Sequence record: LC727698.1
DNA length: 64,000 nt
Direction: 5' to 3' (one strand)
Each line of letters opens with the position of its first letter. Position 1 is the stretch's first letter. The translations under genes and the position numbers were made by a program. Positions 8,722 to 23,440 of this stretch are shown one piece after another. The notes below the pieces were generated by a model. The model searched no databases and was not told where the DNA came from. It worked only from the letters and a program-made list of their open reading frames with translations.

Positions 8722-9111
8722 TTGAGATTACCAATGTATAATTTCGAAAAGTTTATAACCGAGTATCTGTATAATAAAAAAGAGACAGAGCATTACGGGT
8801 ATTTTTCTATATATAATTCTATTATTTTAAAGTGTATTTCTGGATGTTCAGATGAGCACTACGAATTTATTTCTAATTCTTTTATATCATATAAATGTAA
8901 AAAGAAATTAATAATAGAATTTTCTGTTAAATCGAAAGATAACATATACCATTCCATTAAACTTGCAGCAAAATATCACTCTAAAACAAAAGAAAAGTTA
9001 GACACTATTACTAATGTGGATAATTTATTTTTGTTTGAAACAAAAATAGGAATTATAGGTAATAATTTGTCTGTATACGTAGATTTAGGCGAAGTGGAAT
9101 ATATTGTATGA
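8722..9111 (+). CDS. Hypothetical protein
   Basis: ORF; likely start at internal ATG. Confidence 0.5.
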   Translation: MRLPMYNFEKFITEYLYNKKETEHYGYFSIYNSIILKCISGCSDEHYEFISNSFISYKCKKKLIIEFSVKSKDNIYHSIKLAAKYHSKTKEKLDTITNVDNLFLFETKIGIIGNNLSVYVDLGEVEYIV

Positions 9112-9744: not shown

Positions 9745-10074
9745 ATGAAAAATAGAATTAAACATATTTTGGATTTTTATAACGGATTTTCTTATATAGT
9801 CCTATCAAATGTTATATTTCTTTTTAGTTGTATAGTAACTACAGTATTCCTGTGTTATGTGTCTAAATTAAATAATATACAAAATTTAGTATCCGATACG
9901 GTTTATACAATTATAGTAGTTTTGTATTGTATTATAGGTCTTCTGTGTGGATTAAAAAGTAGTGAAATAGTAGAATTGATAAAACCGGAGAAAAATATTG
10001 CAACTACTGTAGGTGTTATAACCGGCATCACTGTAGTGTTAGTTGCTATGTTGGGATGGATATATGCGGCGTAA
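9745..10074 (+). CDS. Membrane protein (about 3 TM)
   Basis: Three hydrophobic segments. Confidence 0.6.
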   Translation: MKNRIKHILDFYNGFSYIVLSNVIFLFSCIVTTVFLCYVSKLNNIQNLVSDTVYTIIVVLYCIIGLLCGLKSSEIVELIKPEKNIATTVGVITGITVVLVAMLGWIYAA

Positions 10075-11491
10075 TAGAAATCTTTCATCTTATAATAGAT
10101 TGATATCAAAAGTAGCCGTTAAGATTAAAATTCCCCATATGATGAGCGGGAAATTAAATGGAGCATTTGATCACTATTTTAGTAAGAATATAATAGCAGA
10201 GGATGTTGCTATCAGTAGCTGGGCAGGAGATAGCAGACATGCAGGAAGATCATCAATATATTCTGACGATATACCGCGTCAATTAATACGCAACACTGCA
10301 GGAAATACTTCAGGTTGCACGTCTTACACTAACAAAGTTATTATGAATTATAAAGAGGATGCCGGAATGACTCAAGTTAACAGAACTTACACACGTAATA
10401 GCAACGATATTGAGTTTTCTCTGGAAGAAGAATTCTCTAATGTCTTTAATGAATCGCCTATAAGAAAAACGTGGGTAGCATTTATAGATTGTAACACAAA
10501 GGCAGTAGAAGAAGCATTTAAAACTTGTCTAAGTAAAGAATCGTTTGATATAATCTCTAAAAAATATACAAATATAACTTCTTATTCGTCATCCGATGCG
10601 GAGCGAGATGCAGATGTTGCATCTGAGGAAATTTGGGTAATAGGAAACGAAAAAGCAGCTATTTCTAGAATTACAGATATTTACGATAGTGTACGATTTA
10701 TGGTAATTTCTGCAAATGATAGTTGCAATGTAGCTAGGTTTGTAGAAGAATTTGGAAAAGTATATGCAAATGCATATCCTAAAGTAAAAGAAGAAAAACC
10801 GGAAATTAATATTATTGTAGCCGATTCCCACGGCTATGATTTGGAGTCGTTTGACATGACTCCTTTGCAAAACGTAGATGTCTTTATTGAAGAAAATTAT
10901 AACGATGATTTTAAAGACATATCTGAATATATAGTAGAAAAAATTATTAGTTCTAGTAAAGGTATAACACTCCTTCACGGCGAACGAGGAACTGGTAAAA
11001 CTAATTTCATCCGATACATTGCAAATAAAGCTAAAAAGAAAAAACTCATATATGTTCCTTCTGATATGGCTCCGGAGTTAGCTAGACCTCAGTTTGTCTC
11101 GTTTGTTATGAACAACAAAGATAGTGTGTTTATAGTAGAAGACGCAGAAAACATTCTCCGTCCTCGAGAAGGCGGCGGCAGTTCGGCAGTGTCTAATCTT
11201 CTTAACATGAGTGATGGTATTCTAGGTGATGCTATTCGGTGTCAGTTTATTTGTACGTTTAACTGTAAAATTACAGAAATTGACAGTGCATTGACTCGTA
11301 AAGGTCGGTTAAATGCAGAGTACGAATTTAACAAATTAACAAAAGAAAAATCCCAAAATCTTTTAGATAAAAAATACGGAACAGGAACATATGTAGCAAA
11401 AGGCGAAATGACGCTAGCAGACATTTACAATATGGATAATCCTGACTTTAAAGTCCAGCTTAAGAAACAAAAAATTGGATTCGGGAACTAA
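10043..11491 (+). CDS. AAA+ ATPase (BCS1/classic AAA-like C-terminal domain)
   Basis: LLHGERGTGKT, FIVEDAE, SNLLNMSDGILG, IDSALTRKGRL; C-terminal KIGF tail; start uncertain. Confidence 0.9.
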   Translation: MLCWDGYMRRNRNLSSYNRLISKVAVKIKIPHMMSGKLNGAFDHYFSKNIIAEDVAISSWAGDSRHAGRSSIYSDDIPRQLIRNTAGNTSGCTSYTNKVIMNYKEDAGMTQVNRTYTRNSNDIEFSLEEEFSNVFNESPIRKTWVAFIDCNTKAVEEAFKTCLSKESFDIISKKYTNITSYSSSDAERDADVASEEIWVIGNEKAAISRITDIYDSVRFMVISANDSCNVARFVEEFGKVYANAYPKVKEEKPEINIIVADSHGYDLESFDMTPLQNVDVFIEENYNDDFKDISEYIVEKIISSSKGITLLHGERGTGKTNFIRYIANKAKKKKLIYVPSDMAPELARPQFVSFVMNNKDSVFIVEDAENILRPREGGGSSAVSNLLNMSDGILGDAIRCQFICTFNCKITEIDSALTRKGRLNAEYEFNKLTKEKSQNLLDKKYGTGTYVAKGEMTLADIYNMDNPDFKVQLKKQKIGFGN

Positions 11492-11496
11492 ACATT

Positions 11497-11739
11497 ATGC
11501 GTAGATATTTCATTGCATATTTTTCACTAGTATTTGTATTAGCTATATCCGGAATTATATATGCGTTAATATATGGATTTGTATTTGCCGGAAAAGAAAA
11601 CTCTCCTGGATATTCTAATAGTAGGGATAATCTTATTAAAAATATGAATGAATTATTAGAACAACAAAAAGCACTAAATTTAGAAATAAAGGAATTAAAC
11701 AAAGAAATTAATTCTACTCAACAAAATTACAAAATGTAG
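11497..11739 (+). CDS. Small membrane-anchored coiled-coil protein
   Basis: N-terminal TM helix followed by heptad-like segment. Confidence 0.6.
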   Translation: MRRYFIAYFSLVFVLAISGIIYALIYGFVFAGKENSPGYSNSRDNLIKNMNELLEQQKALNLEIKELNKEINSTQQNYKM

Positions 11740-11762
11740 ACACCTAACAGTAGTTTCTATAT

Positions 11763-11795
11763 AATAAAACAGGAGCATTAGGCTCCTGTTTTATT
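11763..11795. terminator. Bidirectional terminator between convergent operons
   Basis: AATAAAACAGGAGC-ATTAG-GCTCCTGTTTTATT. Confidence 0.85.
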
Positions 11796-12530
11796 TTTTG
11801 AAATTTTAGTCATTATAGTATTATATAAATCATAAGCACGTTTGATTATACGTTTATATGCTCTGGGGTTTTCATTTTTAAGAAACATAATATAATTTAT
11901 GTGTGCATTTTCTATAAATGCATTTATAAATTCTTCTTTTGTTAAGACAGTTCCTTTTTTGTATAAAAAACTAAATTGATCTACAGTTTGTTCTAAAGCT
12001 TGACTTATTCTTGCATTTATTTCGTATGATTGTCTATAATATGTATCTGAAGATGCCGGATCGTATCTTTTTATTTTTTCATTCTTAAACGGTTGTCCTT
12101 TATTTTTATCTAGTGCATGCCTTAACTCATGTACTATAGTTGAAACTACACTCTTGTTATTACTAAAAGAATTACCATAATAATGAGTATAAACATATAT
12201 AGTATTAGATACTAAGTTGTATTCTCCTTTCTTTGCACCGTGTTGTCCGGAAATGTCAAACACTACCTGTATATCTTTAAATTCATTGTATAGATCATCG
12301 AATATATCATCAGGAATTATATTTTTTAAAACAACAGTATAGGTACTTAACATTAATTGTACAGTCGGCCAATCGTAGTTTTTCAACAACAATTGATCTT
12401 CTATTTCTTCTCTGTGTTGCTTTAAATTGTTGAAATATGATATAGCGTTTGCTACACACATTTTCGCAATATTTTGAATAATCAGTTCTTCGTCTGAAGT
12501 TTCGATTAAATTAATTTCGTTTAGTCGCAC
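11778..12530 (-). CDS. HExxH metallopeptidase-like protein, putative internal head protein (paralog A)
   Basis: VHELRHALD...YEINARI; leader MRLNEINLIE; GTG start. Confidence 0.7.
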   Translation of the reverse strand: MRLNEINLIETSDEELIIQNIAKMCVANAISYFNNLKQHREEIEDQLLLKNYDWPTVQLMLSTYTVVLKNIIPDDIFDDLYNEFKDIQVVFDISGQHGAKKGEYNLVSNTIYVYTHYYGNSFSNNKSVVSTIVHELRHALDKNKGQPFKNEKIKRYDPASSDTYYRQSYEINARISQALEQTVDQFSFLYKKGTVLTKEEFINAFIENAHINYIMFLKNENPRAYKRIIKRAYDLYNTIMTKISKNKTGA

Positions 12531-13200
12531 GATTTTCTGCCCTTTTCTTTAATGTAACATACAATTCGTAACATCTAGATACTATTCGTTTCCATACTTT
12601 TGGATTTTCTTTCTTTAAGTATGTAAGCTGATGACCTTTTGCGAATTTTTCTATATTATCTAGAAACCATTCTTTGGATGGTATTTCTTTTGAAGATCCC
12701 CAATACTGCAAAAATATAACCTTAAGATCATTTAATAATTCGGCTATTCTTGCATTTATTTCGTATTTTTGATTTAAATATTCTTTATGTTTATCTGAAT
12801 TGTTTGTATGTTTATATAATAACGGATTACCCTTAGAACTATCTAATGCATGTTGTAATTCATGAACTAAGGTATTTGTGTATGTTATATTATTTTTATA
12901 TGAATCTGGACCTATATCAAAAAGTGCTATGAGATTTTTGCCATCGGTTCTTTGAATAAAAGCACCGTTGTATTGTTCTGGATGCTCATTCGCATACGGA
13001 CGTATTATTAAATCGGAAATGTTATTTAAAACAGGATACTTATCGAAATATTCTTGTTTTATTAAATCTTTTAGTTTGTATGAATTGTATATTTTATTTT
13101 CTGCATTCTTTTCTATAACAAACCATATTATTTTTGCAATAGTAGATAATATTATACTTTCGCTTGCCTTTTCCGTTAGATTAAATTCTAAAATTTTCAT
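12511..13200 (-). CDS. HExxH metallopeptidase-like protein, putative internal head protein (paralog B)
   Basis: VHELQHALD...YEINARI; C-terminal YLKKENPKVWKRIV parallels FLKNENPRAYKRII of paralog A; leader MKILEFNLTE. Confidence 0.7.
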   Translation of the reverse strand: MKILEFNLTEKASESIILSTIAKIIWFVIEKNAENKIYNSYKLKDLIKQEYFDKYPVLNNISDLIIRPYANEHPEQYNGAFIQRTDGKNLIALFDIGPDSYKNNITYTNTLVHELQHALDSSKGNPLLYKHTNNSDKHKEYLNQKYEINARIAELLNDLKVIFLQYWGSSKEIPSKEWFLDNIEKFAKGHQLTYLKKENPKVWKRIVSRCYELYVTLKKRAENRATKRN

Positions 13201-13206
13201 TATATC

Positions 13207-13401
13207 CTATCCGTTATGTTTCCAATACTGGATAGATTTTTCTTGTTTAGAAACCCAGTCTTTAGAAGGTTTTCCTTTACCCTCATAATATCTAAGGGGC
13301 TTCCCTGTCTTTTTAGAAACAAGTGCCCATTTTCCATTTATATGTTTTAATTCTTCGTCTAATTCTGACGATTCTAGTATGCATATTTCGGAAAGTTTCA
13401 T
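13207..13401 (-). CDS. Small basic putative virion/internal protein
   Basis: Leader MKLSEICILE; KWALVSKKTGKPL...IQYWKH resembles a recurrent large-phage small protein (recall). Confidence 0.65.
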   Translation of the reverse strand: MKLSEICILESSELDEELKHINGKWALVSKKTGKPLRYYEGKGKPSKDWVSKQEKSIQYWKHNG

Positions 13402-13432
13402 AATCTTTAATCCTGTATTATATGTATATGCT

Positions 13433-13458
13433 TATTTATCGCATTATATAACTAAATA
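13433..13458. promoter_or_regulatory. Divergent T4-like late promoters
   Basis: ATAAATA on the minus strand (13433-13439) and ACTAAATA on the plus strand (13451-13458); T4 late consensus is TATAAATA. Confidence 0.55.
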
Positions 13459-13486
13459 GTGTTATCTTGTAAAGGAGGAGTTTTCC

Positions 13487-14467
13487 ATGGGAAGACCTAT
13501 TAAAAGCGATTGGTTTGGTGAAAGCGAAACGGGCCAACCTAAGTTAAGCATATATGCTAAGTTACCTGGTATGACTAATGCTGCCGAGGGTTTTATAGTA
13601 GCACAAAAAGGTACTCGTAAATATAAAGTAAACGTTAACGACACTATAGGCGATGTCTTTCTAGTTAATTCTAAATTAGCTGATTTAAACGAAGGCGAAG
13701 GGGTTATATTCGTAGGCGAAGTAGATAGTGACATAACTGTTTCTAAAATACAACAATACGGATTAGTAGCAGTTAATTCCACTGGCGAAATTCAATTCGG
13801 CGGACAAACACAATGGGTAGTAGACGAAGAAACAGGATTACAACCTGATACTAGTTCTGTCCCGCAACCAAGTAATCAAACGTTGCTTGCAAATGCCAGT
13901 ACTGCATTTAAGAAAGAAAACGGAACATTATGGACTGGTTCGGGAATACCGGCATCAGGAATGTTAGTATCTAAAAATAATATAATTGAACTTGCATTGT
14001 CTGCACACTTGCGCGGTTCTGTTATTAACAGAAAAATAAACGACGACGGTTCGTATGATATATCTCTAACTTCTTCAACACAAGATTGGGCGTTTGACTA
14101 TTGTGTAGGTATTGTATCGCCGGCAGTAACAGATATAACTACAGAATACGACGTTGTTCTTACTGCATATTGCAATTCAGAAGGTAAAGAACAAAACCCA
14201 GCTGTATTTACTTTAGCAAAAGAAGATACATATGTATGGAAAAATACAGTTCTAGACGGAGATATTACTGACAGTGCATCCGATCCCGATAATCGGTGTG
14301 TTCAAAATACTCTTAGATATACGTTCTTTAAAGATAATGTTGTGCCTCCAGTAGGTGAAGAAGATCCTATAGTAGGTACATTTATTATCAAATTAGAAGC
14401 AACCCATAAAACTAACTTTAATACTGTTAGTGCAAAAATGATAGTTCGTGTAACAAAAGATTTTTAA
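13487..14467 (+). CDS. Putative virion structural protein
   Basis: Strong GGAGGAG RBS, late promoter, N-terminal MGRPIKxxWFG motif recalled from jumbo-phage structural proteins, beta-rich C-terminus. Confidence 0.65.
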   Translation: MGRPIKSDWFGESETGQPKLSIYAKLPGMTNAAEGFIVAQKGTRKYKVNVNDTIGDVFLVNSKLADLNEGEGVIFVGEVDSDITVSKIQQYGLVAVNSTGEIQFGGQTQWVVDEETGLQPDTSSVPQPSNQTLLANASTAFKKENGTLWTGSGIPASGMLVSKNNIIELALSAHLRGSVINRKINDDGSYDISLTSSTQDWAFDYCVGIVSPAVTDITTEYDVVLTAYCNSEGKEQNPAVFTLAKEDTYVWKNTVLDGDITDSASDPDNRCVQNTLRYTFFKDNVVPPVGEEDPIVGTFIIKLEATHKTNFNTVSAKMIVRVTKDF

Positions 14468-14479
14468 TAAAATCTAAAC

Positions 14480-14511
14480 AAAGAAAAGCGCTTTTATATG
14501 CGCTTTTCTTT
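14480..14511 (+). terminator. Intrinsic terminator
   Basis: AAAGAAAAGCGC-N8-GCGCTTTTCTTT. Confidence 0.8.
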
Positions 14512-23224: not shown

Positions 23225-23440
23225 ATGAACAAACATTTCGATATAATTGCCGAACTCGAATATCCTACTTATACTGTACAAGTAAGGAAATATCGCGACG
23301 ATGGTAGATATGAGGTTGGCCAACAACCTAACGAGGGCGAGTATGTTGCACGCCACGAAAATTGCACTGCCGACGACGCAATCCGCGTACTATCTCACTA
23401 CTGCACAGCAGCCCTTTATAAAATAAAGAAACAATACTAA
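23225..23440 (+). CDS. Hypothetical protein
   Basis: GAGG RBS, 71 aa, moderately GC-rich codons. Confidence 0.7.
   Translation: MNKHFDIIAELEYPTYTVQVRKYRDDGRYEVGQQPNEGEYVARHENCTADDAIRVLSHYCTAALYKIKKQY

Follow-up and report, generated by a model that had tools for sequence, protein, structure and literature searches.

Proteins that travel in a phage head and enter the cell with the DNA have been described or predicted in several systems: the mechanism is known from the internal proteins IPI-III and from Alt of bacteriophage T4, the enzyme type from polyvalent metallopeptidases, and ejected head proteins of jumbo phages from phiKZ and SPN3US. The leader of T4 internal proteins reads MKTYQEFIAE; in IPIII packaging needs no more than the first ten residues, while processing is controlled by residues 8 and 10. 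The T4 prohead protease gp21 cleaves after the Glu of an L/I-x-E site. Here we analyse a cassette of three genes in a stretch of 64,000 nucleotides (the window), which is the terminal part of Pseudomonas phage 30-3 (LC727698.1), a PA5oct-like jumbo phage. All three products carry an N-terminal leader similar to that of T4, and two of them are predicted zincin-like metallopeptidases. We propose that the cassette is a late operon of T4-type internal virion proteins that would be loaded by their leader, trimmed by a gp21-type protease and leave the capsid together with the DNA, a reading that we hold to be reasonably probable.

The locus resembles the T4 internal proteins in its leaders of about ten residues that end in (L/I)-x-E, in the clustering of late genes, in the occurrence of the leader on unrelated small proteins, in the presence of a gp21-type protease with a gp22/gp23-type head, and in having one small basic product. 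The T4 leader and the N-terminus typical of the family described below, MRLQELFLVE, have M1, a basic residue 2, F7, an aliphatic residue 8 and E10 in common. In contrast to the T4 internal proteins, the mature parts have no sequence similarity to them, the cargo includes two predicted enzymes of 26-28 kDa, and the carrier is a 285-kb PA5oct-like jumbo phage rather than a member of the Tevenvirinae. Targeting and cleavage, which are demonstrated in T4, are what we infer for the PA5oct-like counterparts.

The second T4 precedent is Alt, an enzyme that is loaded in the prohead, trimmed by gp21, delivered with the DNA and directed at host proteins, as we propose for the window proteins. Alt is an ADP-ribosyltransferase processed at both termini, whereas in the zincin-like window proteins only one site is predicted. 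The ejection or inner-body proteins of phiKZ, 201phi2-1 and SPN3US are likewise jumbo-phage head proteins with propeptides that are cut after Glu by a gp21-related protease, and they are ejected, as the window proteins are here suggested to be. They differ in having S/A-x-E sites and longer propeptides, and in belonging to the nucleus-forming lineage. We know of no zincin of the present family reported among the head proteins of these three phages.

The three-gene operon and its leader

Positions 11000-14500 of the window are 100% identical to phage 30-3 and share 97.6-98.7% identity with ten further records, all from PA5oct-like jumbo phages of the genus Wroclawvirus (genomes of ~285 kb). The whole PA5oct genome (MK797984) served as the reference for annotation and proteomics; it has 449 genes, of which 93 are positive and 356 negative by mass spectrometry (MS) of virions. 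The genes for the protease, the capsid protein and the sigma factor are sited outside the window and were read in PA5oct, which is 98% identical. To collect members of the wider family, a profile was run exhaustively against 1.84 billion representatives; the alignment A3 contains 123 sequences, and leaders were tallied separately in 127 full-length representatives. The cassette consists of three head-to-tail minus-strand genes for proteins of 64, 229 and 250 residues, with the following features (positions of the window; the basis of each assignment is given in parentheses).

13433..13440, minus strand: putative late-promoter box GATAAATA, containing ATAAATA, 31 nt 5' of the first ATG (sequence)
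13411..13414, minus strand: AGGA ribosome-binding site of gene 1 (sequence)
13207..13401, minus strand: gene 1, homologue of PA5oct gp382, 64 residues, ATG start (open reading frame, ORF)
13372..13401, minus strand: leader codons 1-10 of gene 1, MKLSEICILE (sequence)
12511..13200, minus strand: gene 2, homologue of PA5oct gp381, 229 residues, ATG start, predicted zincin-like (ORF and paralogy)
13171..13200, minus strand: leader codons 1-10 of gene 2, MKILEFNLTE (sequence)
12850..12864, minus strand: HELQH of gene 2, residues 113-117 (sequence; columns invariant in A3)
12748..12762, minus strand: EINAR of gene 2, residues 147-151, with the Glu predicted to be the third zinc ligand (sequence and A3)
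11778..12530, minus strand: gene 3, homologue of PA5oct gp380, 250 residues, GTG start, predicted zincin-like paralogue (ORF)
12501..12530, minus strand: leader codons 1-10 of gene 3, MRLNEINLIE (sequence)
12117..12131, minus strand: HELRH of gene 3, residues 134-138, in predicted helix 125-143 (sequence, model and A3)
12009..12023, minus strand: EINAR of gene 3, residues 170-174, in predicted helix 168-191 (sequence, model and A3)
11766..11795, unstranded: hairpin terminator common to the cassette and a converging plus-strand gene (gene 3 stop codon in its loop)

Genes 2 and 3 encode paralogous proteins, with 36% identity across 132 aligned residues (E 8e-21), and gene 3 overlaps gene 2 by 20 nt. 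The GTG start of gene 3 is supported by its use in the PA5oct annotation, by an AAGGG Shine-Dalgarno sequence 5' of it, and by a 50% identical orthologue of the gene 3 product (P0003) that has ATG at the same aligned position and begins with MNLSEIYLNE. The hairpin at the end of the cassette has a fold energy of -19.2 kcal/mol and a z-score of -7.0, and none of 200 shuffled sequences was as stable. Since the promoter box lies before gene 1 and the hairpin at the stop codon of gene 3, the three genes constitute one operon.

All three N-termini follow the pattern M-(K/R)-(L/I)-x-E-(I/F)-x-(L/I)-x-E, in which the last Glu is residue 10; residues 8-10 are ILE in gene 1, LTE in gene 2 and LIE in gene 3. 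The shared E5 and the (L/I)-x-E ending at residue 10, which the initial annotation of this DNA had pointed out, are thus both present. Given the amino-acid composition of PA5oct's 93 virion proteins, the combination of E5, L or I at residue 8, and E10 is expected by chance in about 4e-4 of proteins, or ~0.2 times in 449 genes. Here it occurs in three adjacent genes, the first of which is no paralogue of the other two. The N-terminal peptide of gp380 would be LNEINLIETSDEELIIQNIAK if the protein is uncut, and the peptide that begins at T11 is TSDEELIIQNIAK.

Two other ORFs of the window have an I-x-E that ends at residue 10, namely 8734-9111 on the plus strand (PA5oct gp375, MYNFEKFITE) and 23225-23440 on the plus strand (gp415, MNKHFDIIAE). 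The N-terminus of gp375 resembles the T4 leader. Both proteins are without the M-(K/R)-(L/I)-x-E start and are undetected in virions, and their I-x-E ends may be chance matches.

Probable late expression and association with the virion

The cassette had initially been annotated as late because of a T4-like ATAAATA promoter, and the PA5oct genome agrees with this assignment in the distribution of the box, in the sigma factor it encodes and in the strand of the cassette. There are 32 copies of GATAAATA in PA5oct, 27 of them within 60 nt 5' of a correctly oriented ORF. Eighteen of the 32 precede a virion-protein gene or this cassette at a distance of at most 60 nt, compared with 2% for 100 permuted octamers. 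The genes preceded by the box include those for the tail sheath, baseplate proteins, gp148, gp159 and gp237; it also occurs upstream of gp130, gp136, gp195, gp197, gp305 and gp349. Judged from this distribution, GATAAATA appears to be the late-promoter box of PA5oct-like phages, differing from the T4 late box TATAAATA in its first base. The PA5oct protein gp137 (70783-71625), annotated as hypothetical, matches phrog_12791, 'sigma factor for late transcription', with E 8e-82 and has collinear tblastn matches to T4 gp55; by these similarities it is a predicted late sigma factor of the T4 gp55 type. In PA5oct the Crick strand carries the cassette, and the PA5oct paper reports that early transcription proceeds almost exclusively from the Watson strand. 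The promoters named in the main text of that paper, TATAATA and TTGAC, are of the sigma-70 type; this main text mentions neither GATAAATA nor the three cassette genes.

A similar arrangement is found in the metagenomic relatives. Of 54 IMG/VR loci, about 35 (hand count) have N-ATAAATA, mostly as GATAAATA, no more than 60 nt ahead of the family gene, and so does contig L010. In several IMG/VR contigs (L019, L039, L042, L045, L048 and others) the box ends just 4-5 nt before the ATG, and late mRNAs starting from such boxes would be nearly leaderless. In L027, L028, L042, L059, L062, L065 and L066 the family gene lies directly 3' of the 3' end of an apparent transfer RNA gene.

Both larger proteins are probably associated with virions: gp380 and gp381 are annotated in the GenBank record of PA5oct as 'structural protein, ESI-MS/MS', that is, detected by electrospray ionization tandem MS. 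PA5oct also encodes the head components that the proposed loading would use. With E 5e-24, gp152 matches Peptidase_S77, the family of T4 gp21-type prohead proteases, and gp154 falls into the Gp23 capsid family with E 1e-96. The head genes are arranged in the order portal, gp150, gp151, protease gp152, gp153 and capsid, where gp153 has many L/I-x-E sites and occupies the place of the T4 scaffold gene 22. This is the order of the T4 genes 20, 67, 68, 21, 22, 23.

In gp154 (85850-87037) a likely maturation site reads FLVE42/NASAG, and cleavage there would remove a propeptide of 42 residues. Its distance upstream of the conserved RRxxPxxIAxxIxGVQPM is presumably similar to that of the T4 gp23 cleavage site.

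Among the neighbours of the cassette is a gene for a BCS1-like AAA+ ATPase (PA5oct gp378; 10043-11491, plus strand), which converges on it, and a gene for an 80-residue membrane protein (11497-11739) is located between the two. According to speculation in a published review, BCS1 proteins of phages transport folded proteins into heads. The divergent neighbour on the other side (13487-14467, plus strand) is a homologue of PA5oct gp383, an MS-detected virion protein with no PHROGs family match that is annotated in one related genome as a putative surface or adhesion protein.

A wider family and a portable leader

Searches of Pfam, PHROGs and NCBIfam with the three window proteins returned only sub-threshold hits or hits of 'unknown function'. 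A word-indexed protein search brought up no relatives of the 64-residue protein and just three of the 250-residue protein, and in a tblastn search of 50,697 deposited phage genomes the family was confined to the 11 PA5oct-like phages and absent from the wider relatives of these phages. The profile search, on the other hand, yielded 319 clusters at E<=1e-3 and 71 at E<=1e-10, almost all of them metagenomic and most with proteins of 220-280 residues. By its sequence features this is a predicted zincin family of 319 clusters that is without a name in any curated library. Many of the family contigs in IMG/VR are 100-520 kb long; in L054 the family gene has a gp23-like gene in its flanks, and in L042 a gp55-like one.

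The leader is a feature of the family as a whole. A hydrophobic-x-E site ending at residues 7-13 is present in 120 of the 127 full-length representatives, and it ends at residue 8 in 22, at residue 9 in 46 and at residue 10 in 39 of them. At position P3, 82 proteins have L, 30 have I and 7 have V, and at P1' T occurs 76 times and S 17 times. A basic residue 2 (K or R) is shared by 106 proteins and an acidic residue 5 (E or D) by 102. All 122 sequences of A3 that cover the column have E10, and P3 is L, I or V in 114 of 115. Mean information in A3 is 2.56 bits at positions 1-10, compared with 1.55 over the whole protein; given this value and the invariance of E10, the leader is as constrained as the metal site. 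M1, E5, L8 and E10 are invariant even in four proteins that are just ~29% identical. A typical N-terminus of the family is MRLQELFLVE, followed after the junction by TTEEDRAIISLS.

The leader also occurs on proteins outside the family. Contig L009 carries a three-gene cassette as in the window, and its gene 1 orthologue was the only homologue of the 64-residue protein found beside family members in other loci. In contig L011 three genes in a row encode proteins of 77 residues (MKLKDLMTE), 275 residues (MKIVQLLE, with HExxH) and 246 residues (MKITNLLAE, without HExxH). Across 49 distinct IMG/VR loci 56 ORF starts fit the leader pattern, 22 of them in ORFs without HExxH, while a control with reversed sequences gave no hits among 1014 candidate starts. 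Four MS-detected PA5oct proteins have similar leaders: gp150 (MKINDIITE), gp205 (MKLFEVFTLYE), gp237 (MFLKDVKITE) and gp238 (MKIKDILVE). Their genes are located in PA5oct as follows.

82921-83142: gp150, virion protein with a leader-like N-terminus
130473-131921: gp205, virion protein with a leader-like N-terminus
156341-157528: gp237, virion protein with a leader-like N-terminus
157529-157843: gp238, virion protein with a leader-like N-terminus

The gp150 gene lies between the portal and protease genes, in the place of the T4 core proteins gp67/gp68. From its occurrence on unrelated neighbour proteins, the putative leader is portable.

In the polyproteins P0015, P0019, P0051, P0064 and P0069 the zincin domain is internal. 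Its N-terminal border is of the type ...LEEEIVDE/TAEENQ and its C-terminal border is (L/I/V)-x-E/(A/S)SGYIPS; the companion domains are ART-PolyVal in P0051, GNAT in P0069 and a nucleotidyltransferase in P0015 and P0064, and DUF5661 is also represented in the set. These polyproteins, which come from phage contigs of the 240-kb class (locus L014:10001-12529), also contain a repeated module of ~50 residues that always starts with (L/I/V)-x-E/(A/S)SGYIPS. These arrangements recall the polyvalent proteins of Iyer et al. (2017; PMC5512222), which are predicted in that paper to be delivered with phage DNA and among whose domains the zincin-like metallopeptidase is the most frequent; one metallopeptidase subtype described there has an Asp three residues past HExxH. 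The relatives of the window proteins share with these MPTase domains a helix with HExxH followed by a helix with Glu, the Asp at the same distance, embedding next to ART-PolyVal, GNAT and nucleotidyltransferase domains, and the predicted delivery with DNA. In contrast to them, most members of the present family are stand-alone proteins of ~250 residues with a leader of their own, and the available text of PMC5512222 does not tie polyvalent domains to a T4-type leader or to gp21-type processing. As sites of the gp21 type stand at the domain borders, the prohead protease may cut the polyproteins, which suggests that this enzyme, and not just the embedded metallopeptidase, takes them apart.

The location of the domain between other effector domains would also suit a different role, in which the packaged zincins process phage proteins of the virion or of the ejected set, either within the prohead or shortly after they are ejected, and do not act on host proteins. 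Iyer et al. favour autoprocessing as the main role of polyvalent metallopeptidase domains and consider that an uncharacterised zincin of other jumbo phages could act in maturation, and the two paralogues of the window could form an enzyme-substrate set with the small co-transcribed protein. We consider such a role unlikely, since the polyprotein borders already fit the prohead protease with their (L/I/V)-x-E sites, so that a second processing enzyme is unneeded, and since most members stand alone at ~250 residues with no attached cargo. Moreover, no deposited phage outside the 11 PA5oct-like genomes was found to carry the family, which points to an accessory rather than a core assembly function.

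Predicted metal site, counter-evidence and proposed role

The two larger paralogues were initially thought to have a gluzincin-type zinc site, formed by HExxH and a downstream E-INAR, and the residues in question turned out to be invariant in 123 sequences. The invariant columns of A3 (numbering of the 250-residue protein) are H134, E135, H138, E170, R174 and R231, and D141, three residues after HExxH, is present in 122 of the 123 sequences. An AlphaFold2 model of the 250-residue protein, computed with A3, has a mean predicted local distance difference test score (pLDDT) of 93.1 and a predicted template modelling score of 0.90, and its predicted topology is zincin-like; structure prediction was among the checks proposed at the outset. 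Residues 1-10 are mostly coil with a mean pLDDT of 72 and are followed by a helix at 12-38. The strands 63-67, 88-92, 102-105 and 110-114, in a strand region spanning 63-122, all precede helix 125-143, which carries HExxH, and E170 lies on helix 168-191. The predicted order of sheet, HExxH helix and Glu helix is that of the zincins as given in PMC5512222. In the model of the 64-residue protein three strands and a helix are predicted with block-mean pLDDT values of 80-88 over residues 21-60, while residues 4-12 have pLDDT <50 and are predicted to be disordered; this protein has no family or fold match in curated libraries or in a search of solved structures. The leader is thus modelled as flexible, and accessible, in both the 250- and the 64-residue proteins.

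The resemblances of the zincin domain to described families are distant. Sub-threshold Pfam hits over the 123 members comprise DUF6782 (15), M91 (11), SprT-like (8), M76 (4), M90, MPTase-PolyVal, M48 and M78; the MPTase-PolyVal profile (PF18818) hit one of the 123 members, at a sub-threshold E of 0.002. A sequence search of the Protein Data Bank (PDB) gave a best E of at least 0.34, and a Foldseek search of the same database matched the jannalysin and collagenase peptidase domains weakly. In BFVD the best fold matches (E ~1e-4) are uncharacterised phage proteins, followed by a 'large polyvalent protein associated domain' and by IrrE-like and SprT-like proteins. The window proteins are thus similar to NleD/M91, IrrE-ImmA/M78 and SprT-like enzymes in weak profile or fold resemblance and in being small single-domain HExxH proteins, of a kind that acts on specific intracellular proteins. 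They differ from these in that all matches are sub-threshold and in the absence of the third His of SprT-like/Wss1 proteins: none is found in HELRHALDKNKG, and an invariant Glu stands 32 residues past the second His instead. In a review of jumbo phages, the one to three SprT-like metallopeptidases of some 'group 2.2' members are named as enzymes that might target the host.

Several observations weigh against our proposal. No curated peptidase family in Pfam or NCBIfam matched the domain above its threshold, and the Foldseek search of the PDB, with E values of at least 0.08, had as its best match no peptidase but the HExxH domain of an alpha-ketoglutarate-dependent oxygenase (template modelling score 0.35). 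Both results would fit proteins that are no peptidases at all, with the HExxH/E metal site serving other chemistry or with a non-catalytic structural role. We find this very improbable: the oxygenase match is itself weak, the sub-threshold Pfam hits are nearly all to zincin peptidase families, the viral fold matches are polyvalent-protein domains and IrrE-like and SprT-like proteins, and the element order together with the invariant H-E-x-x-H...E are gluzincin features. As to the virion, the initial annotation expected all three proteins in the particle; the PA5oct annotation records MS detection for gp380 and gp381 and none for gp382, the homologue of the 64-residue protein. Cut at E10, the 64-residue protein would have 6.3 kDa and an isoelectric point of 9.6, and a single tryptic peptide of at least 7 residues is expected, which makes an MS miss plausible. 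Detection by MS is furthermore a sign of virion association and does not place gp380 and gp381 inside the head.

The remaining points of this kind concern the leader. Genome-wide, 14 of 449 PA5oct protein starts have a bare [LIV]-x-E at residues 8-10, with no enrichment, and a hand comparison gave 3 of 93 MS-positive and 11 of 356 MS-negative proteins, so that the genome-wide scan proposed at the outset failed in this bare form. The bare tripeptide was dropped as a packaging marker in favour of the full leader, as it is not enriched among virion proteins; with the tripeptide unenriched and the full motif rare by chance, the signal sits in the full leader. The gene 1 orthologue of contig L009, which reads MRLDEFEVRLDE, has its L-x-E ending at residue 12 instead of 10. 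Finally, the leader patterns for the PA5oct and IMG/VR scans were loosened after the data had been seen, and their counts are descriptive, with no formal test.

That MS gives no location within the virion also leaves room for an uncleaved N-terminus, a structural or regulatory segment such as an autoinhibitory plug, in proteins that enter the virion by another route or sit at the tail or baseplate. Conservation runs on past residue 10 as T-T-E-E-D-R-A-(I/L)-x-S-L, and the two parts could be one longer element. Such a segment is improbable in view of the leaders on unrelated proteins that have no T-T-E-E-D, of the variation in leader length (8-11 residues) around a constant (L/I)-x-E-(T/S) junction, and of the internal copies that keep the junction without the M-(K/R) start. 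In addition, the N-terminus is predicted to be flexible and outside the fold, and a matching protease is encoded by the phage.

The most parsimonious reading is that of T4-type internal proteins, for which we suggest the following course of events. Late in infection, the gp55-type sigma factor would direct host RNA polymerase to GATAAATA. The N-terminal leader of each product would bind it to the scaffolding core during prohead assembly, and the prohead protease gp152 would cut after the Glu of (L/I)-x-E, releasing within the capsid a basic protein of 6 kDa and two zincin-like metallopeptidases of ~26 and 28 kDa. At the next infection the freed proteins would exit the capsid with the DNA, and the two enzymes could cleave proteins of the newly infected cell ahead of any phage gene expression. 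Leader-dependent loading together with cleavage at E10 is likely from the combined analysis; for ejection and action on host proteins the chances are slightly short of even. More tentatively, and with a clear preponderance of doubt, we speculate that M-(K/R)-(L/I)-x-E-(L/I/F)-x(1-3)-(L/I)-x-E is a general capsid-loading label in mostly uncultured T4-related large and jumbo phages. Zincins would be its commonest cargo and would form a new class of pre-made, DNA-delivered proteases, which would cleave defence or regulatory proteins of the host within seconds of infection.

We found no literature description of the zincin family, of its family-wide T4-type leader, or of the leader on many unrelated neighbours in uncultured T4-related large phages; the same holds for the GATAAATA late box and the gp55-type sigma factor of PA5oct. 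To our knowledge, few head-carried, DNA-delivered proteins are known beyond T4 and the phiKZ group. Because head-carried proteins act before phage genes are read, they are prime candidates for counter-defence. The sequence label described here is kept in more than 100 diverged proteins, is portable, and appears to mark cargo in a cultivable jumbo phage of P. aeruginosa for which virion proteomics exists, and stand-alone zincins are now linked to the polyvalent polyproteins. If the leader is indeed a general address label, the whole injected proteome of such phages would be readable from sequence alone. The leader could also serve to bring foreign proteins into capsids of the PA5oct type, as is practised with T4, and the two enzymes are candidates for explaining the broad host ranges of PA5oct-type phages.

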